DNA of 64,000 nt from Blepharisma stoltei ATCC 30299 (Eukaryota > Protista > Ciliophora), in the NCBI GenBank assembly GCA_965603825.1, contig CBFDEM010000026.1:62001-126000 (forward strand), written 5' to 3'. The translations under genes and the position numbers were made by a program. Under the pieces are notes generated by a model, which worked only from the letters and a program-made list of their open reading frames with translations, was not told the DNA's origin and did no database searches. Below are positions 2,774-26,176 of this stretch, in pieces (position 1 is the stretch's first letter; each line of letters begins with the position of its first letter).

Positions 2774-4003
2774 ATGTCGCAGCCTAACAAAGAAGTCCTT
2801 GAAAAATACGCCGAGCTCCAAGTCGAAACAATTAAGTCAGAGCTTCAAAAAATCATGCAAAACACTTTCAATAGCCTTTCTGAAGACTCTTCAAAATCAG
2901 CAATCCAAGAATCCCAAGAACTGCATCGGCAAATAGATTCGCTGAATCGTCAACTCCAAGAGATTACCCAAACTCTCACAACTCAAACCTCATGTAACGA
3001 ATCTCCAAAACCGCATAGCAGGTCTTCCCCCTCCATTCTTAACTCCACAATCCAATCCCTCAAAGAGCTTCAAGAATCTACAAATCTGCTTATTCAAAAC
3101 TGCAAGGGAATTTTTCCCAAAGTAATAATCTCCCAAGACTCCAAAGTGAGTATACAAAGGTTTTACTGCAAAGAAAGTGAAGAAAAGATAGATCAATACA
3201 CCTGGGTTCTTAATGTTGCCAACGAAACCAAAGATTACTTTAGAAAAGTTGAGTTTTTTATTCTTGAAGACAACTTAAAGATAGCTGAAATCAGACTTAT
3301 TGAGCCAGATACTGACATAAAAAAGCACATAGGCCTTCTTGACGTAAAAGACATATATGGCAAACATATAATCGCCAAAATCGACGACTTCCCTGTTTCT
3401 GAGATTTTCCCTATTATGAGAATCGAATTTAAAGGGGCAGAACAAATTCCAGAAGAAGACGAAAACAACCCAAAAAACCTTCTGAAATACACCATTTTGA
3501 ACTCTTCGCCAGAGACTATTGATAATCTCTATGTTTTCTGTAATGAGACCTGTGAAAAGTATTATACAGAAAAAGAATTGGATTATGGAGAAATGGCTGA
3601 AATTGTGGTCCCTTATGGAAATTTAGAATCTGTCAGTTTGAGGGTTATGAAAGATGATGAAGTTATGAGCATTGCCTATGCACTTAATTTAGGAGGTGAA
3701 GAAGGAGAAGAAAGCAGTGAAGAAGATGTGGATTCAGATGGCCCTCAGCCTAAAGAGGGTAATGGACTATCCTTTTCAAGCCCTGCACCAGTGATAAGAC
3801 CTCCTGTAATGGATCCAGCAGCTAAAAAAATAAATCAATTGATTGAGACACTGGAAATTGGCAGAATATGTCTAGCTGACCAAATAAAAAGGAATTACCC
3901 TGGAATTGATTCAAAAATGCAGCTGTTTAAAGCGGTCAGCAGATACACTACTTATGAGGATTGCATTGACTATTTAGTGGATGGTGGAGTGATTGAGCAA
4001 TAA
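2774..4003 (+). CDS. Uncharacterised protein with N-terminal coiled coil, beta-rich middle and acidic linker
   Basis: 409-aa ORF from ATG to TAA with AT-rich flanks; no family recognised. Confidence 0.75.
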   Translation: MSQPNKEVLEKYAELQVETIKSELQKIMQNTFNSLSEDSSKSAIQESQELHRQIDSLNRQLQEITQTLTTQTSCNESPKPHSRSSPSILNSTIQSLKELQESTNLLIQNCKGIFPKVIISQDSKVSIQRFYCKESEEKIDQYTWVLNVANETKDYFRKVEFFILEDNLKIAEIRLIEPDTDIKKHIGLLDVKDIYGKHIIAKIDDFPVSEIFPIMRIEFKGAEQIPEEDENNPKNLLKYTILNSSPETIDNLYVFCNETCEKYYTEKELDYGEMAEIVVPYGNLESVSLRVMKDDEVMSIAYALNLGGEEGEESSEEDVDSDGPQPKEGNGLSFSSPAPVIRPPVMDPAAKKINQLIETLEIGRICLADQIKRNYPGIDSKMQLFKAVSRYTTYEDCIDYLVDGGVIEQ

Positions 4004-4115
4004 TAAAATAATTAGTTTATAAAATAATATGTTCTTTATAAAATAGGGCCTTTTATAAAATCCATATGAAAATTAACCCAGATCTCAAAATTGGGGGATC
4101 ATTTTACAAATATTT

Positions 4116-4742
4116 ATGATGGACTACCCAATGAAGCGTTCCAGAGTACGACTAACAGTCGCCGACAAGCTCAATATTATTGAAGAATACGAAGAAACCA
4201 ACATAACCCTCCGAGATTTAGCCGACAAATACAACATTGGCCACACCTCTATCTGTGGATGGCTTAAAGAGCGTGAAAAGCTAAACCAATCTGACAACGT
4301 CAACGCCCGACGAGTTTCCCGTGAAAAAGTCCTCGACAAACTCGCCAACCAATCAGCCCCCAGAAGACGAAAATCCTCAGGCAAAAAACTCATGAAAATG
4401 ATTTTAAACAGAAACAAAAAAGTGACTGAAGAAAACGAAAAATTAAAATCAAAAATCGAGCAATTAAAAGAAGAAATCACTGACGTCAAAGTAGAATCAA
4501 AAAAGGCCAAAAAAGAAGAAAAAAGCACCTTTTTTATATATGCACAGGAGCTAAGCACAGGGGAAAGGAAAAAAATCAAGATAAAAGAAAGTGATACGGT
4601 GGAGGAGCTGAAGAAAAAAATTAAGGAAGAATACCCTTCGGAGAACGATAGGATAGTGTTCGCCATTCAAGAAATGAACGATGACACTAAAAAAGTTGGG
4701 CATTATAGTGTGAAAAATAAGTCTACAGTTATGATAATTTAA
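4116..4742 (+). CDS. CENP-B/pipsqueak-type HTH + coiled coil + C-terminal ubiquitin-like domain
   Basis: RxRLTVADKLNII...LADKYNIGHTSICGWLK is a psq/CENP-B N-terminal HTH pattern. The C-terminus FIYAQEL...IKESDTVEELKKKI...RIVFA..MNDD.K.V.HY.VK..STV resembles a beta-grasp Ubl and lacks GG. Confidence 0.7.
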   Translation: MMDYPMKRSRVRLTVADKLNIIEEYEETNITLRDLADKYNIGHTSICGWLKEREKLNQSDNVNARRVSREKVLDKLANQSAPRRRKSSGKKLMKMILNRNKKVTEENEKLKSKIEQLKEEITDVKVESKKAKKEEKSTFFIYAQELSTGERKKIKIKESDTVEELKKKIKEEYPSENDRIVFAIQEMNDDTKKVGHYSVKNKSTVMII

Positions 4743-6320: not shown

Positions 6321-9117
6321 TTATTGAGGGAAAAATCCTGTTCTCATTTCCATTTCTCTTAATTCAATTTCTGGAACTATATTTCTGGTTATTGTAATTC
6401 TTTCAGCAACTCTAATCCAGCCTGCAAACCTAGAATTAAAAAAGCTGTTTTTCATTTCTGCATATTTGACAGCAATTGAGTCTTTTTGCCACCCTTCGGC
6501 CCAAGCATAATTATTAAACCCTTCAATTTTCATCTTCAATTCTTGTAGCTCTGCTGGGAAATTTGGATCAAAAGTCAAGAAAACGACATTTTTTTCCATT
6601 CTCATGATGATTTCTCTTAATTCTTTATCATAGTCATCGTTATAAATTCCAATTAAATTTTCTAAAGCCCATCTACGAGAATCTTGAAGCCGGAAATAAA
6701 TTTGAGTATAAAAAGGGTCATTTTGACTTAAAGTGGCTGTAGTGAAGCTGCTAAGATGATTTGCCCATGCAATGGCATCTTTTACATTTTTAATATAAAG
6801 AGTTTGGTTTATTATAGTTGTCATATGCAGCAAAGAAATTTTGTATATTTCACTAGGCATTCTTTGAATTTCATTAGAGTTGTTTTCATTAAGACACCCA
6901 AACGCATTCACTAAATGATAAATTGAAATAATTTTATCATTAAGTAGAAAGTCATATAAATATAAAGATACACTAGCACTACGGTAATTTGCATTAAATT
7001 CATTCAGCTCTTTCATTAAAGTATTGATATCAGTTGCTGATAATTCCAGTGTGTGAGGTGCTTCTTTGCACACATTTTTAAACTGTGATCCAAGCTTCAT
7101 ATATATCGGGTCTGCCTTATCAAAATCTGAAATCCCTTTATTCACACTTTCTTCTTCTCTTAAGCAAGAATCCAACAAATACCATTTGCATAGAAACTCT
7201 TGGCCTTTTATTTTCAAATGCACAGCAAAATTAATAAGCTCATATTTTATATCCTCTGGCTTGTTTTTTAGCTCATTTTTATAGTTATTGAACATTCCTA
7301 CTGTCTGTGTGAATCTTGTGGAATAAACGTCTTGAATATGCTGAATAGTTTTGTTTATTTTGTACTCCATAGCCTCTTCGTATGTTTTTTTATTTTCTTC
7401 ATCTACTTCGCGTTTAAGCTCTGCTGATAATAAATTTTGATATAAATCAAAGGGCTGATCATCAAATTGCTTTATTCTAAAGTCTTTTATGCGTCCTTGA
7501 GCTTCTCTTCTAATTAAGGAATTTTCGATATACATCAGACAGTATGCTGATATATAGCCATTTCCACCCAAGGCATTAGTCATAACTTCGCTTTCTTCGA
7601 CTTGAGTAATCATCACATCACTGTATTTTCTCCACACTTCATATTCAGCATCATACACATATGCATAATAATGCCCTGCCCCAGCTTGCCCATCATGGAT
7701 CAGTATAGAGTGCAAATGGTATTCATGATTTTTCAGCTGAGGGACGTTAAAAATTTCTTCTATTTGGAACTGATACTGCTCTAATTGGGTTTTCATCAAT
7801 TTTATTTTTGTGACTATTTCTCTAGTAAGGGTTTGCAAAAGCGTTTTGGAGCGAGAAATTTGAGGATTATTTGCTATAACTTTTTCTGGGGTAAAAATTA
7901 TTAGACCTTCTTCATCAATTTCCATAGCTTGATTAGGGTTTTCATTGTAGGACAAAAATTCAATAGTCTGCTGAAGAATCGTATCTAGCCCAGAATTAGT
8001 TGAATTGTAATTATTCAGCTTTTCTAAAGAAGCCTCAAGGAATTTTATACGATTTTTAAGCAGGAGCATATTTTCTCTTAGTTTTGAGCCAATTTCTTTA
8101 TTTTTTGCCATAAATCGGTCTGGGTGCAGTATTTTTGGAAATTTGAACTGCTTATGGATTTTAATGGTAGAATTCGTCACTTTGTCATATTTTACTCTTT
8201 GGATTTGAAATAAAATTATCCCAGGAAGTTTTTCAAGCCAAAATTCTTGAGAAGCTGTCGTTGCATTTTCTTGTGGGGTCAAATACCCTTCAATTTGGCT
8301 ATGATAAGCTATATCCCACGCGCTATACAAGTCCCCTTCATCTACATCTACAATAATCTGCCCAAAAGGTGCTAGATTTTTAATTTGGACCAAAGAGCCA
8401 TCCCTTTCAGCCGCTTCTAAAAATTCGTGCTGTTTTCCATAGAAAAGTTCAGAAATAATACCTTCTTCACTGATTTCGTGGCCTGAAATGACCATGCTGC
8501 CTTTTCTATTTATAAGAGTAGGAGATTCATTCAATCTTTTTTCTTTATTTTCTTCATAAGGCTGGGCTGTTTGTAGGCCTTCTTCTATTCTGGCGACTAA
8601 GTTCATATTAAACTCTCCTACATCTTTTTGGTCGCCAATAGCAATTTGATTGCCGAAATCGTCGACTAACGCTTTAAGGACATTTCCTGGGTCGACATAG
8701 AGTCGGTTGCTTCTAATCATGTGGGCAAATAAGCGCTGCAGTTGTTTGACTAGCTCAATGCTGGCTTTTTTTCGGGTGTTTTCAACACTATCGTCTTGAA
8801 GATTTTGCAATTGGGAAGGATGAGGTCTGAAATTTAAGATTTTTTCGACCAGTGTAGGGATCATAAAGTAAGATTGCATCAAGGAGTTGAAATAGCAGGT
8901 ATTCCCGATGTTTTTTAAGCCAACAGGAATTCCATCTATACGCAAACGCTGTTCAGCCTTTAGAGGTTCATAAGAAGCAACACTGTTGCCGCTTTCTAAG
9001 AGAGACATCTCTATAGCTCTAGAAATATCTTCGTCTTCTGTAGGCATCGCTGGGCCCTGTATAGGCAGAGGGCCAATAGGTATTGCGTCTAAAATAGAAA
9101 TTACTTGCAGAAGACAT
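6321..9117 (-). CDS. Ubiquitin-specific protease (C19), USP25/28-like, with N-terminal UIM (~926 aa)
   Basis: Cys box GLKNIGNTCYFNS; His box YHLHSILIHDG..GAGHYYAY; UIM EDEDISRAIEMSLLE. A 16-nt intron at 9089-9104 (gtaatttctattttag) joins ATG 9117 in frame. Confidence 0.92.
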
Positions 9118-9478: not shown

Positions 9479-10450
9479 ATGGTAGAAAAGCAAATCGACG
9501 AATTTTTCTGTCCAATTACCCTTGAAATAATGGAAGACCCAGTAATCGCTGCTGATGGCCACACTTATGAGCGATCAGCCATCACTGACTGGATTGAAAA
9601 AAACAACCTAAGTCCTTGAACTGGTGAAGAGTTAGCTAACAAGAATCTTATCCCAAATTTTGCTTTACGCTCCTTAATCCTCGATTTTAAGAAATCATTT
9701 TCTGGCGAAGACTCTCAGCTTGTAAACGATATGAGAATTCATATCGAGGCCAAGAAAAATTTAATTGAGCATATAAAGAAATCAATAACCACCCTTACAG
9801 AACTAAGTCATGATCTAGAAGAGCATCTTTTCAGATGCAAAGTTTCTAATACATCAGGAAACATTGGGACAATAGCAGGGACTGCGCTGCTCTTTACCAC
9901 TGTTCCAATATATGGGGCTATAGCCCTAACTGTTGGAGGGCTGACTTCGCTTGGAACTTCAATAACTCAGTATTTTATTGAAAAAAATAAAAAAGAACAG
10001 ATCAGGGAAGTGCTTAAGGAAGAAGAAGACGCAGAAGAAGTTTTTAATTCGACATTTTTGACTCTTGGGAATTCAATAGATGCTGGAAAAAGTACAGCTC
10101 AGGCTTTGTTTATGCTAAGCAAAATCAGAAAATCTACGATTTTAGTGAGAGCGTATAATAATTTTAAAGCAACTAGCGCAGCGAATTTAGCTTTGAATTC
10201 AGCACAGACAGCAAGTGCAGCAAAGGCAATTACTTTTCCAAAGGCACTCAAAATAGGTGCGAGGGCCAAGTGGTTTGGATTCGTTGGGGCAGCACTGAGT
10301 GCTGCTGATATAGTAATGACGTGGAAAATGGACAATGAAACCCTTGAACAAATAAAGCAGTGCATTAAAGACAGAGAAAACAAGTTAAAGCTGCAAGAAG
10401 AAGGAGCTGCTGAACTAGAAAGGATCATGGAGAATAATGATTGTTTATAA
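9479..10450 (+). CDS. U-box + ApoL-like protein, copy A (323 aa)
   Basis: ATG 9479, then U-box [31 protein letters not shown]...SP(TGA=W)TGEEL...PNFALRSLI, in frame with ORF 9731. Gly-rich hydrophobic hairpin plus C-terminal coiled coil. Confidence 0.85.
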
Positions 10451-10519
10451 TTCTTCCTAAATAAACTATTTATAGAGCCTGTTTTATATATAAATTTAGC
10501 TGCTTTATTCAGAATAGGA

Positions 10520-12025
10520 ATAAATTGCTCTTAGCACATGGAAATTATTTTACTAATGCCACCCTTAAATAGTGTGAGCAAAATGTTTTAAAAGAAAAAT
10601 CTCCTAAATAATACAGATGTATAAATTATAAATTAATAAAGAAAAAGCTAGGGCTCTTCTCAAAATGAATTAAAATCGATAAAAGCATTGCAATTATTAT
10701 TATATTAATCTAAAGACCTCTCCAAAGCTTCAAGCTCTTTCATCTGAATCTCAATCATTCTTTCTCTGCAGTCAATCTCCTTCTTTATTAATTCTAGTGT
10801 CGAATTATCCATCGTCCACGTCAAGACAATATCAATAGTCGATATGGCGACCCCTGCAACTGCACAATATTTCGAAAATTTCCCAACTGTCAGCGCTTTT
10901 GACACCGTATTTCCTCCAGAAATCACATTTGCAGTAGGCTTTAGAGCAGCATTTGCAACCCTTGCTGCTTGCATTGCCTGAACCCCTCTTACAATTTTTG
11001 TAATTCGTGCACCAGCCATGACCCCTTGCGTTATAACATTTGCGGTTTCTACAAAATATTGGGCTTTAATTTCAGAGACTTCATAGCGAATTGCAGCTTT
11101 TTCTTCTTCAATTAAGACTTCTTTCATTTTTTTGAGCTTGCTTTTCTCTATGAAGTACTGAGTTACGGTGGTTCCTATAGAGGTTAACCCACCTGCAATT
11201 GCGCCTATTATACCTACAATGGCCAGAGGAGTAAAAATAAGTGGAGTGCTTGCTATAGTGACACCGTTTCCAACGGTATTGGAAACTTTGCAATGGAGAA
11301 GATGTTCATTAAGGTCTTCTTTTATATCATTTAAATAAATTATTGTAATTCGAATTTTGTCGATATAGTCTTTTTTGATGGAAATCGTGTCCAGCATTTT
11401 GGAAACAAGACCGTTGGCATTTTCAACTTCTGAAGGGGTTGCTGTCTGATGAGTTCGATCTAAATACTGAGATATCATAGAACGGAGACGGCGGTTTTCG
11501 ATAACTTCTTTATTTTTAAAATCTTCTCGAGTCATAGGTGAAGTATTGCTTCTTTCAAACCATAGCAGGATTGCTATCCTTTCATAAGTGAACCCGTCAC
11601 TAGCGACTACAGGATCTTCCATTATAGCTAGAGTGATTGGGCATAAAAAATCTTCAGGAACATGATCGGACTCCACCATAATTTAGGAAACTTTTATTAG
11701 GGATTTATTTATTTAAATGAATTTATTATTTATCGAATCTACAAAAATGAAATTTAGTTTCTACTGATAAAATAGTAAAAAAAATGGGAATATTTCTTTG
11801 CTAGTTTAAACGAAGAATTGGTATTTAGTATGCTGCTTAAATCGTCTCATTAAAATTCCTTTTTAACTGAACGTTTTTAAGGTTTTTTTAAATTTTTTAA
11901 TAAAATCTTTCATTAGATGACAAAAACCTATAATTCTATCTAGCTGAATTTCCAAATATATATTTATCAGAGATTTTATGAAAAATATTTTCAAACAAAA
12001 GAGTAAGAATTTGCTTAAAGTTCGC
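10520..12025 (-). repeat. Inverted segmental duplication; partner ~17918-19436 (+)
   Basis: Gene plus ~340 nt upstream and ~180 nt downstream align in reverse complement, e.g. gcgaactYtaagcaaattc and ttccatRtgctaagagc. Confidence 0.85.
10705..11679 (-). CDS. U-box + ApoL-like protein, copy B (324 aa)
   Basis: Complete ORF. U-box [38 protein letters not shown]; C-terminal part homologous to copy A. Confidence 0.88.
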   Translation of the reverse strand: MVESDHVPEDFLCPITLAIMEDPVVASDGFTYERIAILLWFERSNTSPMTREDFKNKEVIENRRLRSMISQYLDRTHQTATPSEVENANGLVSKMLDTISIKKDYIDKIRITIIYLNDIKEDLNEHLLHCKVSNTVGNGVTIASTPLIFTPLAIVGIIGAIAGGLTSIGTTVTQYFIEKSKLKKMKEVLIEEEKAAIRYEVSEIKAQYFVETANVITQGVMAGARITKIVRGVQAMQAARVANAALKPTANVISGGNTVSKALTVGKFSKYCAVAGVAISTIDIVLTWTMDNSTLELIKKEIDCRERMIEIQMKELEALERSLD

Positions 12026-12989
12026 TTTAGCTAAAATATATTAGAAGTTCTAGTCACTTATAATTATAAATTCAATAAAATACTTATCGCACAAATTATC
12101 AAAATCAATGAAACCCAAATTTATTTAAATATCTAAAGTTGCATTGATATTGAAGAAAATTTTTATAATTATAAGGAATTCAGTTTATTATCATAACTAA
12201 ATTATTAAGATAAGTCTTAGATTATTTCGAAAAACCATAAATAATTATTATTCAGTGTATCATCTCAATTAAACGCTGAATAAAATTTATTTGTAATTGA
12301 AATCTCCATAAAGGTAGATTTGTGAATGGATTTAAAAATTATGAATCAGAGCCACAATAAGGCTAATACTTAAAATTATATCCCATCTATAGTCATCGCT
12401 TTTCAATCTTACAAAATTATTTGTAATAGTATCGCGTCTATCCTTAAACTTAAAAAATATATTGCATTTTACTCCAGCTTATGGCCTTGATTAATCTGTT
12501 TCTTCAAATTAGCACTATTAAAGTTTGAGCTAGAAAAAGTAAGCAAGCCAGTTATTTTTTTTAATTTATTTTGCATAAGCTAAGCTTATCGCTAGTAGTA
12601 TGCTCTCTTTTTGGTCTTAAAGGATTTCAAAAATTATTACAAATTTTTGATATGCTAAAAATCTATGACTTCCAAGCCCACTCTTTTTGCGGCCATTTTA
12701 AAGTTACCAAGTATGCATTTTAGAGCTCTTGAATTCTTGTAGAAGCCCTTTGAAATTTGAAACAAAAATTCATTAGGCCCGGATATTAAAATTTTATCAA
12801 TATCATAGAAGGGTAATTCAAAAATTATATTAAACTCCAAGCAAGATATAATGAAAGTACCTATTAAGAATTTCCATATATCTTATTGTTATAAGTCTGT
12901 TTTCTATTGTAAATAGCTTATCTATATGAAAATACCCAAACTCTAAGTAATAATCAACTAATAAACATTTATTTTATATGTCACCTTAG

Positions 12990-13510
12990 GAATATGGCAA
13001 CAGAAAGTGCAGGTGAGACTGATGGGATTTCTCTTTAAAAAACGAATGCCTTACTCATATTCTTTCAGAAATAGTTTATCTTCAATCAAAGAGTCCATGC
13101 ATAGAATTAAATTTTCGCAGAAATTCCAAAATTCCCACATTTTGTCAAGTAATTTTTCGAAAAAGCTGACGATTCGACTTGAGATGAATTCACACATGGG
13201 CTTAATTCAGCTGGAGATATGGTCTTGTTTCAAGCTGGTTATAGATTCATTTTCAGAGTTTCAGCTGGACGGTTTAATCTATTTATAAACGACTGAAAGT
13301 TGAGTTTAATAGGCTAATCATCGAGTTTGATCAGTATTCGCAAAGTGTGGTTGATGGCCAAATTAATGTGATTATAGGAGTTTTGGGTGTTTTTATTGAG
13401 ATTTCGTTTATTATGTGCTTTTGGATTTATTTGCTATTTTATTAGAAGAAAAAAGTATTTGAGGAAAATTAAATCTTTGATGAAAATAATTCCATATCCC
13501 GAATATAATA
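12990..13510 (+). pseudogene. Decayed C-terminal fragment of a multi-pass membrane protein
   Basis: Coding-like composition with broken frames; ends in a TM segment IIGVLGVFIEISFIMCFWIYLLF followed by KKYLRKIKSLMKIIP. Confidence 0.4.
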
Positions 13511-13789
13511 AGTATTTATAAAATCTAGCTTTTCCTACATTAGTGATTTATCTTTTTTCTTTAAATATCAATAATAGTAATATTTAGAGAGCTCAAAATT
13601 TTAGCATGTTGTAAAAAAGAAATATATTGCAGCGTGCGTCGACTATTATTGATAAAAATTAAATTCCATGAAACATTTTAAAAATAATTTTTTAAAATTT
13701 TTATATGCAAACGATAAATATAAACAAACTTTTTTATAAATTACTAATTAAGAAAAAGGAATTAATTATCCTTCTAAGAGTCCTGCTCA

Positions 13790-14460
13790 AAGCTGAATTT
13801 AAGTCTGATTGGGAGTTGGCTTAGAATAAGATCAGTTCTTATCTGTAGCTGGCTTGCCGTTTGTGAGTGAATTTGCCAAGTATGGTCGCGATAGCCTGGT
13901 TATCCGTAGTTGTTGCTTTTAAGTTGCTGATTTTTAGAGTCTTTGCCAACGGATAGGCGAAGTCGACAATAATGTTTGGAGAGACAAAGCTAAACTTGTA
14001 CCCAACTGAGTCAACTCTGCAGGAATTTCCAGATTGAGAAATTACATCAGCGCATTTAAAGCAAGTAGGACTAGCGTTGCAAGAAGTGCATGAGTCACAA
14101 GCTAAATAAAAGTTACCTAAGCAACTTGTAGAAGAGCCGCTATTATAGAGGAAAAAGTTTGGATTGCATTGAGTGCATACCTTTTCTGGTGTTCATAATG
14201 CACAATTGGGAGGGGATTCTGTATAAAAATTACTCGAGACACAAGTAAGTCCTTGGAGATCAAAATTAGTTTTACATTGACACTTATTCGCAAGGACGCC
14301 ATTTAGATCATTGCAAGACGAGCACACTCCATCATTTGCAGAGCATGTGCAAAGTGCCGGGCATGGGCAAGCTGTTGAGCTCAAGCATCCCACATCGGAG
14401 TGACAATAAGTATTGCAAGAAGCTGGACAAGTCGAAGTTGTAGCATTATAAGTAGCTATC
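13790..14460 (-). pseudogene. Fragment of a Cys-rich (furin-like repeat) surface protein
   Basis: CPASCNTYC...CSSCND...CQCK..CTSCNASPTCFKC; 15-nt intron at 14102-14116 (gtaacttttatttag); no credible start or end. Confidence 0.6.
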
Positions 14461-14678
14461 AGAAATTTTGAATTTTTAATAAATTTAGCCCTTGTTTGAC
14501 GCACGTAGGTGACTTATCTTACAACATTTTATTAGAGAACCCAATTCTGAGTAACTAAAAGAAACATGCGGCAAAATAAGTGAAACAAGAGTAAAGAAAA
14601 TGCCTATGGGGTGCCATATAAAACTTCTCAATAATCTAAGAGTGTCGGCAAAATTAAAAATTCGGGAATATTTAAAAA

Positions 14679-14950
14679 ATGGTTGAATTGACACTTCTTC
14701 CTGATGAGGATGCTTGCCCAATTAGTAGAAAGATTATGGAAGACCCTGTAATTGCTGCTGATGGAGTCATCTATGAGCATAGAGCAATAATTATCTATTT
14801 TGAAAATAATAACGTCTCTCCAGTAACTTTTTAAGAATTTGAAAATAAAGAAATTGCTACGAATTTTACCTTGCTAGAAAATTTCTATGGAGAAATTGCT
14901 TATAATTCTTTCTAAATAAACTAATAGAGCCTATCTAAATAAAATAGCTA
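14679..14950 (+). pseudogene. Internally deleted U-box/ApoL-like copy
   Basis: U-box start nearly identical to the 15294 gene, with a premature TAA at 14832. It is joined directly to sequence matching the stop/3' flank of copy A (ttataattcttYctaaataaacta). Confidence 0.8.
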
Positions 14951-15293
14951 AATTTAAATCTCAATTAAAATATGCTTATATTTTTTAGCTTTAATTATTT
15001 AATGCAAGCATAGCCTCTTCAAGAAAATTACACTGGTTTCATTCTCTCTAAAACAAAATAGAAAATAACCGGCCAATTTTTATAATGTAGAAAGATCTAA
15101 AAAAATTAATGAATATTCATAAGAGATATCCATAAACTAATAAACTATGCTAGCATATATCATTTGCTGAAGACTAAAAGCTAAAGAAACATAACCCTTT
15201 CGTGAAAGTAAATAAACCGAAATATTAGTTTTCCATTTATGTAGAAACTAAGTTCACAAATTTCGCAAAAACATAACTAGAATATATATAAAA

Positions 15294-16473
15294 ATGGTTG
15301 AACCTACACTTATTCCTGAAGAGTATGCTTGCCCAATTACTAGACAAATCATGGACGACCCTGTAGTTGCTGCTGATGGATTCACCTATGAGCGTAGAGC
15401 AATAACTATCTTTTTTGAAAATAACAACATCTCTCCAGTAACTTTTAAAGATTTTAAAAATAAAACTCTTGTCACGAATTTTACCTTGCTCTCCAAAATT
15501 TCTAAATTCAAAATGCTAAGGAGTTCAATAGCAACTTCTCAAACTAATGAAATTGAAAACGTGGTTACCTGCACGAGAAACATGATTAACGCTAAAGAAG
15601 TTAAGTTAGATTTATAAGAGTTTAGCGTCACTATTATGCAGCCTATACAGGCTTCCGTCCCTGATTCAGATTAGCCACTTATCCTAAGCAGGATAGATAA
15701 ATACACCATTATTCCCATGATAGATTTGGGTGAGGCAAAGCTTTATAAAAATTGGCTACAGAGAATTTTCTTGCAAAAAAGCTGGATGAAGTTATATTAT
15801 AAAGGCTAAAGAACTTTACGTTGAAAAAATTCGGATATCAATAGCCACTTTGACTAAAATAAAAAAATCTTTGAAAAAGGACTTGCGAAATTGTAAAATA
15901 GTAAACACTAGTGGAAACAGTGCGAGTATTGTGGGGACAGTCCTTCTTTTTACCCCTTTATCCTTAATTGGGCTGTTGACTTTAGTTGTAGGAGGTGCAA
16001 CTTCTATAGGAACCTCTATAACCCAATATTGCATTGAAAAAGATACAGCCAAGCAACTAAAAAAAGCATTATTGGAAGAGGAAAAAGCAAAACTCATTTA
16101 TGAGGTCGAAAAGGTTAAAGTCAGATTTTTTGTAGAAACTGCAAACTCCATAACTAAAGCTGCTATGATTACTACGAGACTTCAGAAAATTATAACTGCT
16201 TGTGAAGTTTTATTAAATGCCACTAGCGCTGTAAAGACTTCAACTACTGCTGCGTCTGCAGGAGGAGTGCTGTCAAAGATCATTACTGCTGGAAAATATT
16301 CTAAAGGTTTTGCATATGCAGGTGCAGCAATCTCTGCAATAGATATTGTTTTAACATGGACACTTGATAATGAAACGCTTGAAGAATTCAAGAGTCAAAT
16401 TAAGAATAAAAAAATGTTACTCAATGAAGAGAGCAGAGAGCTTCGGGATTTAAAAATTATCTCCCCAAGATAA
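15294..16473 (+). CDS. U-box + ApoL-like protein, copy C, interrupted by an insertion at ~15600-15804
   Basis: Removing 214 nt (insert + one repeat) or 205 nt (GT..AG) restores one ORF (MINAKELYVEKIRISIATLTKIKKSLKKDLRNCK) collinear with paralogs. Confidence 0.75.
15591..15813. mobile_element. 205-nt insertion flanked by a 9-bp direct repeat GCTAAAGAA (IES-like or TSD-flanked)
   Basis: GCTAAAGAA at 15591-15599 and 15805-15813; the insert starts GT and ends AG; no clear TIR. Confidence 0.65.
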
Positions 16474-17162
16474 ATAATATCTTTAACTATTCTTCCAAAT
16501 TTAATTATTAATTAGCTAATTATGAGAAAGAGATTAGTCTGCTTAAGCTGCAGTTTTAAATTGCTAAATTAGCCCTTTTCAAATAGAATTTTTTAGTCTC
16601 ATTTTAGGAGGTGGTAACTATTTTTAGTTATTTAATATGCTGGGAAATAGTGTTAAGCTTTTCATCACTTTTTAAGGCATTATATAGTGAAAAATATTTT
16701 ATCATAAACTAGGAATTGAATTAGGCTATGCCTAATAAATAATGATAAATAAATTGATAAAAAATTGTAAATATCTATAAATTATTTAAAACAGCACAAT
16801 CTATTTGTGTGAATGCTATTTTTGAAATAACTGATAAAATAGAACTTATATTTTATATTTTATCAGAAATAAATTGATTTTCCATTTTTGTAGATTCAAC
16901 AGACATTTTATTACCAAAAATAAGCTCTTACTCACCCTAAATCCCTGATTGAACTGTATCATCCTAAAAATTGGAAAAATTTACTATTCTTGATTGATAA
17001 ACAATTTTCACACAAGAATGATACCCACCCTAGTTGCAATTTTTGATAGTAATTAATATAGCTTAAAATTTTCAAACTCATCATAGTATTGACTAGGGCA
17101 TTCTTAATTATAAAATTCAGTAAAGGTTCATAAATTATATTAGAGATTATAATTTTTTTCCT

Positions 17163-17783
17163 ATGAGACTCAATAATAATATTTCAAAGAGAAAGCATTA
17201 CATTTGCACAGTCAGGGATTCTAAAAATCATCTGGTCGCTATCAAAAAAGAGCTTAAAAAGGATCTTAAGAAATGTAGAGTTTTCAATACCCTAGGAGCC
17301 GTTACAAGCATTCTAGGGACTGCGCTTATTTTTACCCCTTTAACACTTTTAGGCGCTGGAGCTGTAATTTTAGGAGGAGGGACTTCTATTGGATCAAAAA
17401 TAGTTCGAAGAGTACTTGAAGGCGATGCACTTGAAGAAGTAAGAAAAGTATTGATAAAAGAAGAAAAAGCACAAATTTCTTGCGAAATTTCAGAAGATGA
17501 ATTCGATCATTTCATGTTAGGACTCGAAAGTATTGTATTTCAAGTGGGTCTGCTTGCTACAACAGCACTTAAAAGTATAGATTTTACAAACTCAAAAGTT
17601 GTAAAAAAAGCTCAGATGAACTTTGCAGAGGGAACTATCAGGCTATCAACTATTGATATAATTGCAACATGGGTAATAGAGAGTGCAACTCTGAGAAAAA
17701 TTAAGGAGGAAATTAAGAAAAGAGAGAAAATAATTGACGAGATGGTGAAAGAGATTGAGTATCTTGAGAGACTTTGGCCTTAA
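17163..17783 (+). CDS. ApoL-like-only paralog lacking the U-box (206 aa)
   Basis: CRVFNTLGAVTSILGTALIFTPL...GGGTSIG and STIDIIATW motifs shared with the family; no U-box in frame. Confidence 0.65.
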   Translation: MRLNNNISKRKHYICTVRDSKNHLVAIKKELKKDLKKCRVFNTLGAVTSILGTALIFTPLTLLGAGAVILGGGTSIGSKIVRRVLEGDALEEVRKVLIKEEKAQISCEISEDEFDHFMLGLESIVFQVGLLATTALKSIDFTNSKVVKKAQMNFAEGTIRLSTIDIIATWVIESATLRKIKEEIKKREKIIDEMVKEIEYLERLWP

Positions 17784-18257
17784 TTTAACAATTGACCATA
17801 AATTCCTTATAGATATAAAATATTCTTCAATGGTTCCCATATCTATTTCGTTTTTATATATTTAAATACATGTCAGATTTATAATTATAAGCAACTACCT
17901 AATTTGTATGAGTCGGTGCGAACTCTAAGCAAATTCCTACTCTTATTTGCTTGAAAATCGTTTTCATAAAATCTCTGGTAAATATAATCTGAAAATTCAG
18001 CTAGATAGATTATAGACTTTGAATGAAAGATTATAAAAAATTTTAAAAAAGACCTTAAAAACGCTCAGTCATAGAGGATTTTTACATATGACGATTTAAG
18101 CAGCATTCTAAATACCAATTATTCGTTTAAAGTAGAAAAGAAGCATTAGCATTTTGCTTACTATTTTATCAATAAAAATTAAATTCCATTTTTTTGTAGA
18201 TTCCATAAATCATAAATTTACATAAATTGCAAATCCCTAATAATAATTTCCTATATT

Positions 18258-19180
18258 ATGGTGGAGTCCGATCATATTCCTAAAAACTTTCTATGCCCAA
18301 TCACTCAAGAGATAATGGATGATCCTGTAGTTGCTGCTGATGGGCACACTTACGAAAGGACAGCAATTCTGCTATGGTTTGAAAAAAGTAATACTTCGCC
18401 TATGACTCTAAAAGATTTTAGAAATAAAGAACTTACCGAAAACTGCCGTCTCCGTTTATGATATCTGAATATTTAGCTAAAACTCATCGGAAAACAACCT
18501 CTTCAGAAGAATTTGAAGGTGCCAGCAGCTTAATTTCCAAGAAAAAATTTTATCTACTCAAACTTAGAATTACAAGAGACTATCTAACTGATTTAAAAAA
18601 TGACCTTAATAACCACCTTCTCAATTGCAAAATTTCCAATACCGTTGGAAACGGTGTCACTATTGCAAGCACTCCACTTATTTTTACTCCTTTGTTCATT
18701 GTAGGTATAATAGGCGCCATTGCAGGTGGGATAACCTCATTAGGAACCTCAATAACTCAGCACTTCATAGAGAAAGGCAAGCTCAAAAGCATGAAAGTAG
18801 TTTTAATTGAAGAAGAAAAAGCTGCAATCCGCTATCAAATCTCTGAATATAAAGCCAAACTTTTTGTAGAAACCGCAATTGGTATTAATCAAATTGTAAG
18901 ATGGGTTCAGGCAATGCAAGCAGCCAGGATTGCAAATGCTGCTATAAAGCCTACTGCAAATGCGATTTCTGGAGGAAATGCATTGTCAAAAGTGATGACA
19001 GTTGGGAAATTTTCGAAAGTTTGTGCAGTTGCAGGAGTCGCCATATCGACTATTGATATCGTCTTGACGTGGACGATGGATAATTCGACACTAGAATTAA
19101 TAAATAATGAGATTGAATACAGAGATAAAATGATTGAGGCTCAGATGAAAGAGCTTGAAGACTTGGAGTCTTTAGATTAA
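18258..19180 (+). pseudogene. U-box + ApoL-like copy with a 1-nt frameshift (pseudogene or assembly error)
   Basis: ctccgtt-tatgatatct versus ctccgttctatgatatct in copy B at ~18457; otherwise open. Confidence 0.75.
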
Positions 19181-19649
19181 TATAATAATTGCAATGCTTT
19201 TTGCGATTTTTTTAGTAGAGGTCCAGGTTTTGCTTTTCTTAATTTTGAATTTATTTATTTTCTGATGGTATCTGAATTATTTAGGCTAATGAAATAGATT
19301 GCTCTCAAATATATGCAAATTTAAGATTTTTAAATCCAAAAAAAGTTTTTTATAAAGATTTTCCTTTTAAAACATTTTGCTCACTCTTTAAGAGGGCATT
19401 GATAAAATAAATTCCATATGCTAAGAGCGATTTATTGATTTTATGTTTTCATTATGGTAAATATGGACTTAGAATATTTCTTTTATTCCACACTCAATAC
19501 AATTTTAGGTTAAAATATAATTCTACTGTATTCATTGTATTTTAACAATTTAAAATATAAAATTCCAGATTTAGAGTAGCATGAGCTACCTCACCTCTTT
19601 GCATATTTCTTTCGAAATTGCTATTTGTCATAAACATTATCTCTTGAAT

Positions 19650-19801
19650 CTGGAGTTATAATATCAAGTATCGATATCGTGATGATTTGGGTGATGAATA
19701 ACTCGACCCTAGAAGAAGTTAAGAACGAAATTGATTTGAAAAAGAGGATGATTGAAATTCAGATGAGAGAGCTTGCAAATCTAAAAAATTTTATAGATTA
19801 A
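19650..19801 (+). pseudogene. C-terminal fragment of an ApoL-like paralog
   Basis: GVIISSIDIVMIWVMNNSTLEEVKNEI..., homologous to 22713-22860. Confidence 0.75.
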
Positions 19802-20182
19802 ACTAATAATCCTGATGTGATATAGCAATAGCAGCGATTTTTACATAAATTTGTGAATGATTAATAAAAATGATTTATATATTTTCAATTTTTTTGCCAA
19901 TTGGAAATTTATTTCTTGATTATTTTCAAACATCATCAAACACATATTATATGAATTCCTAAGTTATGCAGACATAAAAGCTTTTACAAAAATGAATTTT
20001 TTATCGCTATTAAGATTAAATTCAATAAAAACAGTCCATTAAAAAGCCAAAAAGTAAATTTTATATAATTAAATCAGCTATGCATATAAAAGAAAATAAA
20101 TAATTGCTTTTACCAATTTAATAAGTTAAAATTATAAAGAGATAAGTTTTCCATTTTTTGTAGATCTGTATTTTAATTGATT

Positions 20183-21151
20183 ATGGTTAAGCCAGCCTCT
20201 ATTCCTAAGAATTATTTATGTCCCATAACTCAAGAAATCATGGAAGACCCTGTTGTTGCTGCTGATGGATTCACATATGAGCGCAAAGCCATAATGCTTT
20301 GACTTGAGCGCAACGATATTTCTTGAGCGACTGAGAAAAAATTGAAACATAAAGACCTTGTCACAAATGACCGCCTTGCCTCTGAAATTTCTAAATTTAA
20401 TGAAAAAAATCCATCTCCAGACTCTTTAGAAGATAAAGCAGTTACTAGTATAGTACAGTGCCTTGAAAACAAAAGACTCCTTATTGCTCAGCTGCGGATT
20501 AGTATTGTAAAACTAACTGCTGTCCAAGAAGATCTCAGCGAACACTTGCTTAACTGTAAAATTTCCAATACAGCTGGAAATAGTGCAAGTATTGCAGGGA
20601 CTGGTATACTTTTTACCCCTTTGGCTCTAATAGGGATCGTAACTATTATTGCGGGCAGTTTAACTTCTATCGGAACAAATGTAACCCAATTTTTCATAGA
20701 GAAAAGCCTGCAGAAAAGAATGAAAAAAATTATAAAGGAAGAAGAAAAAGCTAAATTCCGCTATGAAGTTTCTCAAATGAAATCCCAATATTTCATTGGT
20801 CTGATGAATTTTGGAACAAATTGCTACCAAGTTGGCTCAAGAATATGGAAAATCATGAAGTACGCTCAGCTTTTTGAAGGCTTAAAAGCTACAAATATGA
20901 CTACTAAAAGCGTATTGGGCATTGGGGGCTGGTCATCAGCAGCAGCAGCTTGCAAAGGGACGAAGTTTGCATTATCCTCAGCCTTTGGGGCTGGACTATC
21001 TGCAGTTGATATTATAATCACATGGACATTTAAAAATTCAACATTGGAACAATTTAAAATACAAATAGATAATAGAGAAAAACACATTGAATTGTATACG
21101 AAAGAACTTGAAGATTGGGAAAAATCGTTGCCAAATGAATGGAAAATTTAA
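20183..21151 (+). CDS. U-box + ApoL-like protein (322 aa)
   Basis: ATG 20183 [39 protein letters not shown](TGA=W)L, in frame with ORF 20342. Confidence 0.85.
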
Positions 21152-21551
21152 TGCAGCAATGCCACTAAGGAAATAATTAATTAAAGTTAGCTTTAATATT
21201 AAAGCTTTCTAAAAATATATATAAATTAAAAATTATGATGAAATAAATAAAATGCTTGCAGATAAGGTGGAATTATGGCTTGGGGAAGTACTTGATCAGC
21301 AAAGCATATTAATAAAATTAAATAAAAATAAATAAGTGCATATATTGAGGCATATTTGAAACAAAAGTTTATAAATCAGAAAATCCTGAAAATTCTGACT
21401 TAATTAATAAAAGCTGGTGTATCCATTTTTTTAAAAGAAGTATTAGCATTTTGCTTACTATTTTATCAATAAAAATTAAATTCCATTTTTGTAGATTCCA
21501 TAAATCATAAATTTACATAAATTACAAATCCCTAATAAAAATTCCTAAATT

Positions 21552-21845
21552 ATGGTGAAGTCCAATAATGTTCCTGTAGATTTTCTATGCCCAATCACTA
21601 AAGAGATAATGGAAGATCCTGTAGTCGCTAGTGACGGGTACACTTATGAAAGGATAGCATATGGTTTGAAAGAAGCAATACTTCGCCTTTGGCTCGAGAA
21701 GATTTTAGAAATAAAGAACTTACTGAAAACCACCGTCTCCGTTCTAAGATATCTCAATATTTAGATCAACTTCATCGGAAAACAACCCCTTCAAATTAAG
21801 TTGAAGATGCCAACAGCCTTGTTTCCAAGAAAAAATATTATCTAA
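21552..21845 (+). pseudogene. Truncated U-box copy (type of the 18258/11679 genes)
   Basis: Small deletion after YERIA shifts the frame; TAA at ~21797; homology ends at ~21845. Confidence 0.8.
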
Positions 21846-22137
21846 GATTTGATTTACTTTGGATAATATAAATATAAGTCGCTTTTAAAATTAAAACCAT
21901 CATGACATAAAGCCTTAAGAATTGACTGCTTTGTGACATCTTTCTCCTTATTTATCTCGAAATTACTAAAATGGTGGTAATCTGTGTTGACCTATAAAAG
22001 GAGTTTTATAATTTCAATTAAATGCTGGGTGTTTGTATAGTAGTCATCCAAATCACCATCTCTGCTCCATAATTTCTCTATTTAATGACATTGCCAACAG
22101 AAAAATCTGCTGACGTCCACAATCTGTTGACTTAAGT

Positions 22138-22919
22138 CAATCTATCGAGGCTCCTTTGGCTTCCGAAGAGCTCAGCAAAGTGGTTTCCACTATGCAAAGC
22201 GCAATTTCTAAGAAAAAAATATATAAGCTTCATCATAATTTATATCATTCATCTAAACGATATCAAAGAAGACCTAGAAAATAGCCTATTTGATTGCAAA
22301 ATCTCCAACACTGTCAGAAATAGCGCAAGCATTGCAGGAACCGGTCTTCTTTTTACTCTATTAACCTTATTGAGCCTTAATTGCTGGCAGTTTAGCTTCT
22401 TAAGGATCCACCATAGCCCAACATTTCATAGAGAAAAATAAGCTTAAACAAATGAAACAAGTTTTAACTGATGAAGCAAAAGCTGCAGTCTGCTATGAAG
22501 TCTCTGAAATTAAAGCTCAATATTTTGTAGAAACCGCAAGTTGTGTAACGAAAGCCGTCATGATCGAGGCAAGAATTGAAAAAATGGCAAGTCAGTTGCA
22601 GACTTTGCAAGCTGTAAGAGTTGGTAATATTGCTGCGGAGCCTGTAATAAAGTTGTGAGTGATGAGGGAGTATTGGTAAGGTGCTGGGAAATTGCCGAAA
22701 TATTGTGCAATAGCTGGAGTTACAATATCAAGTATCAATATCGTGATGACTTGGGCGATGAATAACTCGACCCTAGAAGAAGTTAAGAAGGAAATTGATT
22801 GCAATGAGAGGATAATTAAAATGCAGATGAGAGAGCTTGAAAACCTAGAAAAATCTATAGCTTTAGCTAATAATCCTGCTGCAGTTGTGAAAACGTCGAA
22901 ATTCATTTCTAGGTATTAG
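22138..22919 (+). pseudogene. Decayed ApoL-like portion of a family member
   Basis: DIKEDLENSLFDCKISNTVRNSASIAGTGLLF..., with multiple frameshifts and stops. Confidence 0.8.
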
Positions 22920-23227
22920 ATTATGATTTTTATATAAATTTGTAATAATTAGCTTAATGACGGTTTAAAATAATCAAGAAATAAAATTTCAATTGACAAA
23001 AAATTTGAAAATATTTAAATTACTTTAAGTATACAGACATAAAACTCTTTATAGGCTAAATTCAATAAAAACAGTCCATTAAAAAGCAATTTTATATAAT
23101 TTAATTAGCTATACATATATAAGAAGAATAAATAGTTATCATATGCGATTGCTTTTATCAATTTAATAAGTTAAAATTATAAAGAGATAAATTTCCATTA
23201 ATGTAGATAATGCATTGTAATTTAATT

Positions 23228-24190
23228 ATGGTTGAGCCAGCTTCGATTCCTAAGAACTATTTGTGTCCAATAACTCAAGAAATCATGGAAGACCCTGTTG
23301 TTGCTGCTGATGGGCGCACGTATGAGCGAGCAGCCATAATGCATTGATTTGAGCGCAACGATATTTCTCCAGTGACTGGGAAAAATTTGAAACATAAAAA
23401 TCTAGTCGAAAATTGCCGCCTTGCCTCTAAAATCTCTAAATTTAATGAAAAAAATCCATCTCCAGACTCTTTAGAAGATAAAACAGTATCTAGTGTAGAA
23501 AAATGCCTCGAAAATAAACGAGCCTACATCCTTAATCTGCGGACTACTATAATTTATCTAACTGATATCCAAGAAGATCTCAGTAGACACTTGCTTAACT
23601 GCAAAATTTCCAATACAGCCGGAAACAGTGCAAGTATTGCAGGGACTGGTATGCTTTTTACCCCTTTAGCTCTCGTAGGAGTCGTAACTATTGTTGCGGG
23701 CAGTTTAACTTCTATCGGAACAACAGTAACCCAATATTTCATAGAGAAAAGCCAACTGAAAAGAATGAAAAAAGTTTTATTAGAAGAAGAAAAAGCTGCT
23801 GTCCGCTATGAAGTTTCTGAAATGAAATCCCAATATTTAATTGGTCTGCTAAGTTTTGGATTAAAAAGTTACCAAATTGGCTCAAGAATATGGAAAATCA
23901 TGAAGCACACTCAGCTTTTTAAAGCCTTAAAAGCTGTAGATGTGACTATTTTTTCTGCTAAAAGCGTATTAGGCATTGGAGGCTGGTCATCAGCAGTAGC
24001 AGCTTGCAAAGCAACGAAGTTTTTAAAAGTTTCAGCCTTAGGGGCTGGGCTCTCTGCATTAGATATTGTATTCACATGGGCTGTAAAAAATCCAACATTG
24101 GAAGAATTTAAAATACAAATTGATAATAAAGAGAATCTCATTGAAAAGGAGATAAAAGAACTTGAAGAATTGGAGAATGCGTTGGCATAA
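23228..24190 (+). CDS. U-box + ApoL-like protein (320 aa)
   Basis: ATG 23228 ...TYERAAIMH(TGA=W)FERNDISPVTG, in frame with ORF 23372; ends TAA. Confidence 0.87.
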
Positions 24191-24550
24191 ATCAAGCAAA
24201 GCTTAATGCAGCAATGCTGCTTTTAAATAATAAATTAAAAATGATTCTTTTCCTTTTTTTGAAAATTTAAGGAATAGCCTTAATATTAAATGTTTCCAAG
24301 AAAGCTTTCTAAAAATATTTATAAATTAAAAAAATTATGATAAAAATGATTACAGATAAGATGAAATTATGGCTTGGGAAGGTACTTGACCAGCAAAGCA
24401 TTGAAAAATTAAATAAAAATAAATAAATGCATATATTGAAGCATATTTGAAATAAAAGTATATAAATTAGAAAATCCTGAAAATTCTGACTTAATTAATA
24501 AAAAGCTGGCGCATCCATTTTTTTAAGACCAATGCATAAGGATTTTAAAT

Positions 24551-25534
24551 ATGTCTGAGTCAGCTCACATCCCTCATGAATATCTATGCCCGATCACTCA
24601 AGAAATGATGGAAGACCCTGTAATTGCTGCTGATGGAAACACATATGAGCGAGCTGCAATTACTAGCTGACTCAATCGCAGTAAAACTTCCCCAGTGACT
24701 GAAAAAGACTTTAAGCATAAAAATCTTTCCGATAACTACTTCCTCCGCTATGAAATTTCTCAATTTAATAAAAAAAATCAACCAGTATCAAGCCTTAATC
24801 AAGCAGAAGACCCTAACAAGCTACTTTCCAGCTTACAAAATTTATATATCAATAAAAAATCATACGTCGGTAAGCTGCGAACTTCTATCATTTATCTAGC
24901 CAACATCAAAGAAGACCTAGAAAGCCACTTACTTGGCTGCAAAATTTCCAATACTGTCGGAATCAGTGCAAGTATGGCAGGTACTGGCCTTATGTTTACC
25001 CCTTTAGCATTATTAGGGATACTCACAATGATTGCAGGAAGCCTTACTTCTGTCGGCACAACAGTAACCCAATACTTCATTGAGAAAAAGCAGCTCAAAA
25101 AAATGAAAAAAATCCTAATAGATGAAGAAAAAGCTGCAGTCCGATACGAAGTCTCCATGCTTAAAGCTAAAAATTTGGTAGAAGCCAGCAATTTAGCAAT
25201 GCAAAGCTACCATATTGGCTCAAGGATATGAAAAATGGTAAAAGAGTACCGAACTTTATCAGCATTAAAAGCTTTAAAGTCCACTAAAAGTATTTTTTCT
25301 TTAAAAGGAGGTTGGCCATCAATAATGGCTGCTGGGAAAAATGCCAAATTTTTGAAGGCGTCTGCTATAGGTGCTGGGCTATCAGCAATAGATATTGTGG
25401 CCACGTGGGCTGTAGAAAACTCAACATTAGAAGAAATTAAAAAACAGATTGAAAATAGAGAGAAAACTATTGAAAAGGAGGTAAAAGAAGTCCAGGAGAT
25501 AGAAAAAGCGTTGGTTCAAGACAGAGAAAATTAA
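24551..25534 (+). CDS. U-box + ApoL-like protein (327 aa)
   Basis: ATG 24551; two TGA codons at positions that are Trp in paralogs (the U-box W, and GSRI-W-K). Confidence 0.87.
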
Positions 25535-25549
25535 AAAATTCTAGGTTAT

Positions 25550-26176
25550 TTATTCTTTGTCTATTTTTGGTCTTTTTAATTTATTGACCTTTCCTGCCAT
25601 GCTGTTTCGAAGGATTTTGAGCTCGTTGTTTCTTTTGACGAGCTGGCTCCATTCGGTTTGGAGTGATTTTATTTGGGTTTCAGCGTTTTCCTGATCAGCT
25701 TTTCTGTGCTGGTTGATGGCTGTGTTAGTATTTTCATAGTTTTTCACTGTTTTTTCAATCCTCTTAAGATAAGAATCTAGGTCTTTTATGTGCCTTTTCC
25801 ATGCTTCAGCGCCGAATTTGGTTAGAAGCTTAAGATTGCTGTTCCTCATTTCATTATAGCAAAATTGCAGTTTAGCTTTTCTTAGCTCTTCAATTGAATT
25901 TTCTGTCTCAGCTTCAGCCTTTACAGGGTTTTCTTTAGAATAATTGTCAAAAAATTCTTTAAAATAAGGCGCTGATTCAAAATTTGTCTTTGGCAAAGGT
26001 AATTCTTTTAAATAGTCCCCAGGCTCAAAAGATTTCATTTCCTTCTGAACCAGTTCATTAGCTATTTTGTTGTCATTTTCTGTATATTTATCAAGATATG
26101 GCAGAGCGTCAACAAGATGGGAATTGGCTATTTGATAAGTCAGACGAGTCTTGAATTCTATAGCTTTTGTTTCCAT
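25550..26176 (-). CDS. SPF27: Pre-mRNA splicing factor SPF27 (BCAS2 family)
   Basis: VDALPYLD, ELVQKEM...DYLKELPLP, NLKLLTKFGAEAW, IN.HRK..Q motifs. Confidence 0.85.
   Translation of the reverse strand: METKAIEFKTRLTYQIANSHLVDALPYLDKYTENDNKIANELVQKEMKSFEPGDYLKELPLPKTNFESAPYFKEFFDNYSKENPVKAEAETENSIEELRKAKLQFCYNEMRNSNLKLLTKFGAEAWKRHIKDLDSYLKRIEKTVKNYENTNTAINQHRKADQENAETQIKSLQTEWSQLVKRNNELKILRNSMAGKVNKLKRPKIDKE

Follow-up and report, generated by a model that had tools for sequence, protein, structure and literature searches.

A tandem array of 11 loci of one gene family occupies part of a 64,000-nucleotide stretch of the somatic genome of the ciliate Blepharisma stoltei ATCC 30299 (contig 26, positions 62001-126000; hereafter, the window). 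In the proteins encoded by the intact members, a U-box, through which E2~ubiquitin enzymes are recruited, occupies the N-terminus and is followed by a divergent C-terminal part belonging to the apolipoprotein L (ApoL) superfamily, with a predicted hydrophobic hairpin and a coiled coil. We are highly confident in this description of a tandem family that is specific to the genus Blepharisma and encodes proteins without a signal peptide. That these proteins form a cell-autonomous defense module, in which the ApoL-like domain would dock at or insert into a target membrane and the U-box would ubiquitinate proteins there, is a tentative proposal to which we attach somewhat less than even confidence; the family description and the defense mechanism taken together are our best explanation of the array, about equally likely to be right or wrong as a whole.

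The identity of the N-terminal domain as a U-box is certain. The Pfam U-box profile (PF04564) matches c2 with 68.4 bits (E 6e-19), c1 with 69.4 bits and c4 with 59.5 bits (loci are numbered as in Table 1), all above the gathering cutoff of 21.4 bits, and positions 1-70 of the 73 in the profile are covered. The closest solved U-boxes are those of the plant ligases (PUBs) GmPUB13 and OsCIE1 (U-box domain-containing protein 12), the best match in a phmmer search of the Protein Data Bank (PDB) being that to GmPUB13 (E 9e-12). The CPI, DPV, G.TYER..I..W and SP.T features align with those of the solved U-boxes, and the predicted E2-contact residues, namely, the isoleucine of CPI and the loop proline, are present, with the exception of c8. 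Against solved U-boxes, including U-box-E2 complexes, the model of c2 described below yields Foldseek template modeling (TM) scores of 0.64-0.67 on the target. The likeness to the known U-box E3 ligases (plant PUBs, CHIP and LubX of Legionella) thus extends to all these conserved features, and one difference lies in the partner domain, which is ARM, TPR, kinase or WD40 in the known ligases and an ApoL-like module with predicted membrane insertion in Blepharisma. The other difference is confined to c8, where a TGA codon read as tryptophan (20324-20326) takes the place of the loop proline, giving SWAT instead of SP.T. It is known from CHIP and E4B that this proline matters for E2 binding. Considering this replacement and the near absence of contig coverage of the locus (see below), c8 may be an intact open reading frame (ORF) that is already losing its function.

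The resemblance of the C-terminal part to ApoL had been judged by eye in an earlier note on this DNA, from a motif order that the alignment of the paralogs bears out: U-box, H..CK(I/V)SNT.G...FTP...G..LTS.G..TQ.FIEK, variable segment, S..DI..TW and coiled coil. We compared a profile built exclusively from the window paralogs (A2, 230 positions) with 1.84 billion representative proteins using HMMER and retrieved 160 proteins at E <= 1e-3. Among the 148 matches scanned against Pfam, 33 contain PF05461, the ApoL family, and no second membrane family recurs. The eleven Pfam-positive ApoL proteins found by A2 have E values between 2.7e-7 and 4.5e-4. All ten matches that were picked for an ApoL-like motif (A2 E values of 2.7e-7 to 4.4e-4) score above the Pfam ApoL cutoff, with 38-120 bits; two of these come from the coelacanth (Latimeria), one being annotated as apolipoprotein L3-like. 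Composition is ruled out as the cause of the ApoL matches because the native sequences score 36-47 bits compared to at most 5 bits for the reversed or shuffled controls. The comparison of A2 with the alignment of the ten ApoL proteins using hhalign gave a probability of 99.4% (E 4e-21) and spans a helix, the hairpin and the next helix. In a protein-language-model atlas search with c2, ApoL accounts for 28 of the 30 nearest clusters (score 0.94). Given the agreement between the profile matches, the controls, hhalign and the language-model search, the domain does, as far as sequence comparison can tell, truly belong to the ApoL superfamily, as a remote member beyond the reach of the current Pfam threshold. 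Thus, the resemblance seen by eye holds as a distant one, with no copy reaching that threshold, and the significant match to PF05461 members, on which the earlier note had staked its reading, was found both with A2 and with hhalign. These findings suggest that the ApoL superfamily extends into ciliates. Word-indexed protein searches with the full-length protein and with a 50-sequence alignment returned almost exclusively the proteins of the window itself and no close full-length relatives.

The predicted structure is compatible with this assignment. In the AlphaFold2 model of c2, which was built from the 50-sequence family alignment (mean pLDDT, the per-residue confidence score, of 74.5, exceeding 85 over residues ~90-210), helices 82-147 and 153-213 form a very long hairpin with its tip at the hydrophobic FTPLA turn, followed by a low-confidence variable segment (214-267) and by helices 268-289 and 293-323. 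Hydropathy peaks at residues 136-173 and 268-291, and the predicted tip of the hairpin consists of a 38-residue hydrophobic, Gly/Ala-rich stretch interrupted by FTP. Both hydropathy and the model therefore yield a hydrophobic helical hairpin, then another hydrophobic helix (S..DI..TW) and a coiled coil at the C-terminus, a domain layout that agrees with that of ApoL. The features shared with the animal family (PF05461, including human APOL1, APOL3 and APOL6) comprise an amphipathic helix, the H-x-x-x-(I/V)-(S/A)-x-(T/V)-x-G motif and the Gly/Ala-rich hydrophobic hairpin, and, after a further helix, the second hydrophobic one, with a coiled coil or leucine zipper at the C-terminus. A signal peptide is lacking in the Blepharisma proteins as it is in most APOLs save APOL1, and both families have undergone tandem expansion. 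The Blepharisma proteins differ from the animal ones in that they are encoded by a ciliate and lack everything that precedes Pfam position ~63, the U-box standing in its place.

Further differences from the animal proteins, together with the outcome of several searches, weigh against the assignment. The Blepharisma copies stay under the Pfam threshold: no match to PF05461 (gathering cutoff of 25.9 bits) was obtained for c2 at E values up to 1 or for c1, c10 (ApoL-like part) and c5 at E values up to 0.1, and the score of P0029, a related protein, is just 19.6 bits. In the hhalign alignment, the hairpin of the Blepharisma family is ~13 residues shorter than that of the ApoL members. When the c2 model was compared to the PDB with Foldseek, only the U-box was matched, with no ApoL chain found and the remainder showing generic helical similarity; the ClyA-family pore formers (AhlB, SmhB and MakA), at E values of 0.04-0.18, are matches too weak to use. 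A wide VIA-align search also yielded no ApoL chain, the best hit being a designed helical bundle with a Z score of 10.6, which is below what is meaningful for helical proteins, and in a structure search of the atlas, every TM score was below 0.5. To our knowledge, ApoL is represented in the PDB only by an N-terminal fragment of APOL1. A match of the family profile to the coiled coil of Get1 among the PDB sequences (E 0.03) was judged to be due to chance.

The lack of a direct Pfam match and of structural confirmation, along with the local character of the hhalign alignment, which includes just 89 columns around the hairpin, would be compatible with convergence, whereby a Gly-rich hydrophobic hairpin and a coiled coil mimic ApoL without common descent. 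We regard this explanation, already disfavored by the data, as highly improbable: the reversed and shuffled controls exclude an effect of composition, the HMMER alignments to Pfam-positive ApoL proteins cover most of the domain (A2 positions 7-220 in P0120 and 11-190 in P0171), all 148 matches form one BLAST-linked set, and the neighbors in the language-model atlas are nearly all ApoL.

Of all proteins that were retrieved, only those of Blepharisma showed a U-box adjoining an ApoL-like domain, a count to be read with the understanding that standard-code gene calling cuts such genes at TGA. An analogous architecture was identified in the heterolobosean Acrasis kona, where two proteins (KAL0483500.1, denoted P0172, and P0181) combine an N-terminal C3HC4 RING with a Pfam ApoL domain scoring 89 bits. 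In both free-living protists, an E3 domain of the RING/U-box fold directly precedes the ApoL domain, and in both, there are at least two paralogs. The E3 domain of Acrasis is a zinc-binding RING, in contrast to the Blepharisma U-box, and its ApoL domain is clearly recognized by Pfam; given that Discoba and Alveolata are different supergroups, the two fusions probably arose independently. Other partners of the ApoL-like domain among the A2 matches are a ricin-B lectin and FG-GAP repeats, and an ApoL-like protein of Diphylleia rotans shows a weak, sub-threshold match to a Tse2-type ADP-ribosyltransferase. Ciliate genes of the same domain subfamily that differ in lacking a U-box include the one for the 703-aa protein of Stylonychia lemnae (CDW73428.1, P0053), in which the domain is N-terminal, and, counted with it, a pair on contig L013 (Logan, SRR24908292). 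These two genes (3135-4697 of that contig) lie in tandem right after a RabGAP-TBC gene, and the first contains an in-frame TGA at the conserved tryptophan of DI..TW, suggesting that TGA encodes tryptophan in the source of this contig as well. Literature searches returned no paper that connects ApoL to ciliates or to a fusion involving a U-box or RING, and we found no published description of the U-box and ApoL-like combination.

All 11 loci, which were identified with tblastn and a full-length family hidden Markov model (HMM) in six frames, map to positions 9479-25534 of the window (Table 1), and the HMM detected none outside this range in the rest of the window. In the entire assembly (41.46 Mb in 64 contigs), the sole further member, an intact fusion of 340 aa, is located on contig 16 (C16). 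The array consists of five intact fusions of 320-327 aa, one copy interrupted by an insertion, one without a U-box, one frameshifted, one badly broken and two short relics, with only c2 on the minus strand. The earlier note, which had listed about 12 loci, was right in substance, including the five intact copies, the interrupted copy and the copy without a U-box; the remaining broken or relic copies number four rather than about five.

Table 1. Loci of the U-box-ApoL-like family in the window (positions are those of the window)
Locus	Position	Strand	Description
c1	9479-10450	+	intact U-box-ApoL-like fusion, 323 aa (P0175); one TGA=Trp codon at 9617
c2	10705-11679	-	intact fusion, 324 aa (P0001); U-box aa 7-75 (about 11455-11661), ApoL-like part aa ~95-324 (10708-11397)
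c3	14679-14873	+	U-box relic only, with in-frame TAA at 14832 (tblastn and HMM)
c4	15294-16473	+	U-box part (15294-15599) and ApoL-like part (15796-16470) in different frames, insertion between
c5	17163-17783	+	ApoL-like domain only, 206 aa; long branch, raised dN/dS
c6	18258-19180	+	1-nt deletion near 18456, relative to c2 and c9
c7	19649-19798	+	C-terminal relic, ~50 codons
c8	20183-21151	+	intact ORF, 322 aa (P0004)
c9	21552-22919	+	broken: frameshift in U-box, ~400 nt of extra sequence, TAA stops
c10	23228-24190	+	intact fusion, 320 aa (P0003)
c11	24551-25534	+	intact fusion, 327 aa; two TGA=Trp codons (24668, 25229)

The B. stoltei genome has been described as consisting of 64 telomere-to-telomere somatic contigs, with UGA reassigned to tryptophan and introns of 15-16 nt (PMC9942806). 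The genes of the array show the same reassignment because in-frame TGA codons coincide with conserved tryptophan positions (9617, 20300, 23345, 24668 and 25229): the tryptophan of ILLWFERS in the U-box helix of c2 is matched by a TGA in c10, and the IGSRIWK of c10 corresponds to IGSRI-TGA-K in c11. The standard code is accordingly rejected for these genes. With TGA read as tryptophan, exactly five complete fusion ORFs are obtained (c1, c2, c8, c10 and c11); every gene ends with TAA. The GC content of the window is ~33%.

The damaged copies differ in the nature of the lesion. In c6, the deletion results in two overlapping ORFs, one of 72 aa for the U-box and one of 240 aa for the ApoL-like part (P0002), and no relic of a U-box was found upstream of c5. 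Introns were rejected as the source of the split ORFs in the copies examined, given the single-nucleotide deletion in c6 and the absence of splice joints in the contigs over c8-c11. The insertion in c4 is bounded by two copies of the 9-nt sequence GCTAAAGAA, one at 15591-15599 and the other at 15805-15813 (214 nt apart), which form the exact core of an imperfect 21-nt direct repeat. The insert is far longer than the introns of this species and is single-copy in the somatic genome, so that a repeated mobile element was rejected; it could be a retained germline-limited sequence.

Within the array, a 3-kb stretch (11680-14678, GC content of 28%) contains no long ORF other than one for a 103-aa cysteine-rich protein (14193-14504, minus strand), located between c2 and c3. 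On one side, the array is flanked by a gene for a 908-aa USP-type deubiquitinase (6321-9047, minus strand; Pfam UCH, E 3e-42; N-terminal UIM), and on the other side, by the gene for the splicing factor BCAS2 (25550-26176, minus strand). The location of a deubiquitinase gene directly upstream of genes for U-box ligases may reflect either coincidence or a functional neighborhood.

In the tree of the ApoL-like domain, the Blepharisma copies form a clade (support 92/90) that also includes a long-branch metagenomic protein (P0035), and this clade is adjacent to the tandem pair of U-box-less genes on contig L013. Judging from this position in the tree, the fusion seems to have arisen within the Blepharisma lineage. 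The subclades are (C16, c1), (c2, c6), (c4, c5) and (c11, (c8, c10)). Considering that c1 is nearly identical to transcripts of Blepharisma japonicum (P0176/P0177) and that a contig-truncated relative (P0027) retains the tail of the U-box, the fusion and most of the duplications are, judging by these sequences, older than the split between B. stoltei and B. japonicum.

The old pairs of copies, with dS above 1, evolve under purifying selection (dN/dS of 0.15-0.35), the U-box and the hairpin being the most strongly constrained regions. The recent pairs show higher ratios: 0.66 for c8-c10 (dS of 0.24) and 0.93 for c2-c6 (dS of 0.16), the latter fitting relaxed constraint on the frameshifted c6. 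In the recent pairs, pN/pS exceeds 1 for the variable segment and the second hydrophobic helix (helix B), reaching 1.5 for the variable segment of c8-c10; these values come from few substitutions. The coexistence of intact, relaxed and broken copies of differing ages supports birth-and-death evolution of the family, as had been proposed in the earlier note.

Evidence of expression comes from contigs of four runs of one 2022 study, probably the published B. stoltei time course, that match parts of positions 20100-25600 (c8-c11). Gene-shaped contigs over c10 (23233-24212) are present in all four runs, c11 is covered by a contig at 24553-25550 and c9 by contigs at 22253-22898 and 21610-22231, and c8 is represented by a single 187-nt contig. 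The contigs follow the gene bodies, with the intergenic stretches of this region empty, and hence are probably transcripts of c9, c10 and c11. As these contigs also fall on a broken copy, c9 may be a transcribed pseudogene. In B. japonicum, transcripts in the MMETSP collection correspond to c1 and to a c2-like copy. The respective MMETSP1395 proteins (P0176/P0177) begin at the first methionine past the TGA=Trp codon of the U-box, so that standard-code gene calling, by cutting the genes at this codon, masks the fusion in public, transcriptome-derived protein sets. This truncation is a practical warning for searches of such data.

Human APOL1 and APOL3 are membrane-active effectors of innate immunity: APOL1 kills trypanosomes, and APOL3 dissolves cytosolic bacteria; the ubiquitin coating of invaders in animals is performed by separate ligases. 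Together with these roles, the tandem expansion accompanied by decay, the variable segment and the fusions of the domain to toxin-like and lectin domains in other organisms suggest a defense role for the Blepharisma family. Because there is no signal peptide, the protein would reside in the cytosol. The ApoL-like domain would dock at, or insert as a hairpin into, a target membrane, such as a bacterial envelope or that of a vacuole that is damaged or harbors a microbe, and the coiled coil may drive oligomerization. The U-box, remaining cytosolic, would ubiquitinate the effector itself or proteins located on the target membrane, and, as a defense module, the family would diversify by gene birth and death. 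The reading of the earlier note, a membrane-attack effector that carries its own E3, is in line with this scheme and plausible.

The lack of a signal peptide is also difficult to reconcile with a secreted or extrusome-borne toxin directed against prey or competitors, to which the pore-former-like architecture and the expanded family would be well suited. Furthermore, a U-box requires cytosolic E2~ubiquitin, and we accordingly hold such a toxin to be very improbable. Another possibility is a regulated cell-death or ion-channel effector that would permeabilize the membranes of its own cell, with the U-box mainly limiting its abundance through autoubiquitination. APOL1 and APOL6 are able to cause cell death and are similar to pore formers of the Bcl-2 and colicin types, so the homology with the ApoL superfamily is consistent with this function, as is the fusion itself, which places a degradation signal in cis. 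The present data do not distinguish between self- and substrate-directed ubiquitination, and c10 appears well covered in all four runs with no obvious cost to the cell; on balance, an effector of this kind seems quite unlikely, if not to the same extent as the toxin.

The principal competitor of the defense module is a housekeeping membrane-anchored E3, in which the hairpin would merely tether the U-box to the endoplasmic reticulum (ER), Golgi, mitochondria or lipid droplets for quality control or trafficking, with no immune role. The purifying selection, particularly on the U-box and the hairpin, and the contigs found on some copies in all four runs fit such a ligase equally well, the lack of a signal peptide is compatible with it, and several human APOLs are intracellular organelle proteins. 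To this must be added, on the same side, that the RNA nature of the contigs is presumed, and that microbial induction, membrane activity and ligase activity are so far postulated for the family. However, housekeeping ligases are rarely confined to one genus and rarely found in an array with 6 of 11 copies broken or truncated, and the domain is fused elsewhere to toxin-like and lectin domains. We therefore consider a housekeeping function unlikely, albeit the least unlikely among the alternatives to defense.

ApoL proteins are known mainly as immune effectors of vertebrates. In the Blepharisma proteins, predicted membrane targeting and ubiquitination are brought together in a single protist chain, and the existence of this U-box fusion along with the analogous RING fusion in an unrelated protist suggests that ubiquitination and membrane targeting of the ApoL type are functionally connected. 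A broader and more speculative possibility, which at present we would sooner doubt than accept, is that the combination of an ApoL-type membrane-attack domain and a RING or U-box ligase in one chain is a recurrent form of pre-animal cell-autonomous immunity that would breach or mark the membrane around a microbe and build a ubiquitin coat, having arisen independently in ciliates (with a U-box) and heteroloboseans (with a RING). If this is the case, ApoL-based defense would be far older than animals. Given that Blepharisma is culturable and that an RNA-seq time course is published, this ciliate offers an accessible system for the study of the pre-animal roles of ApoL.

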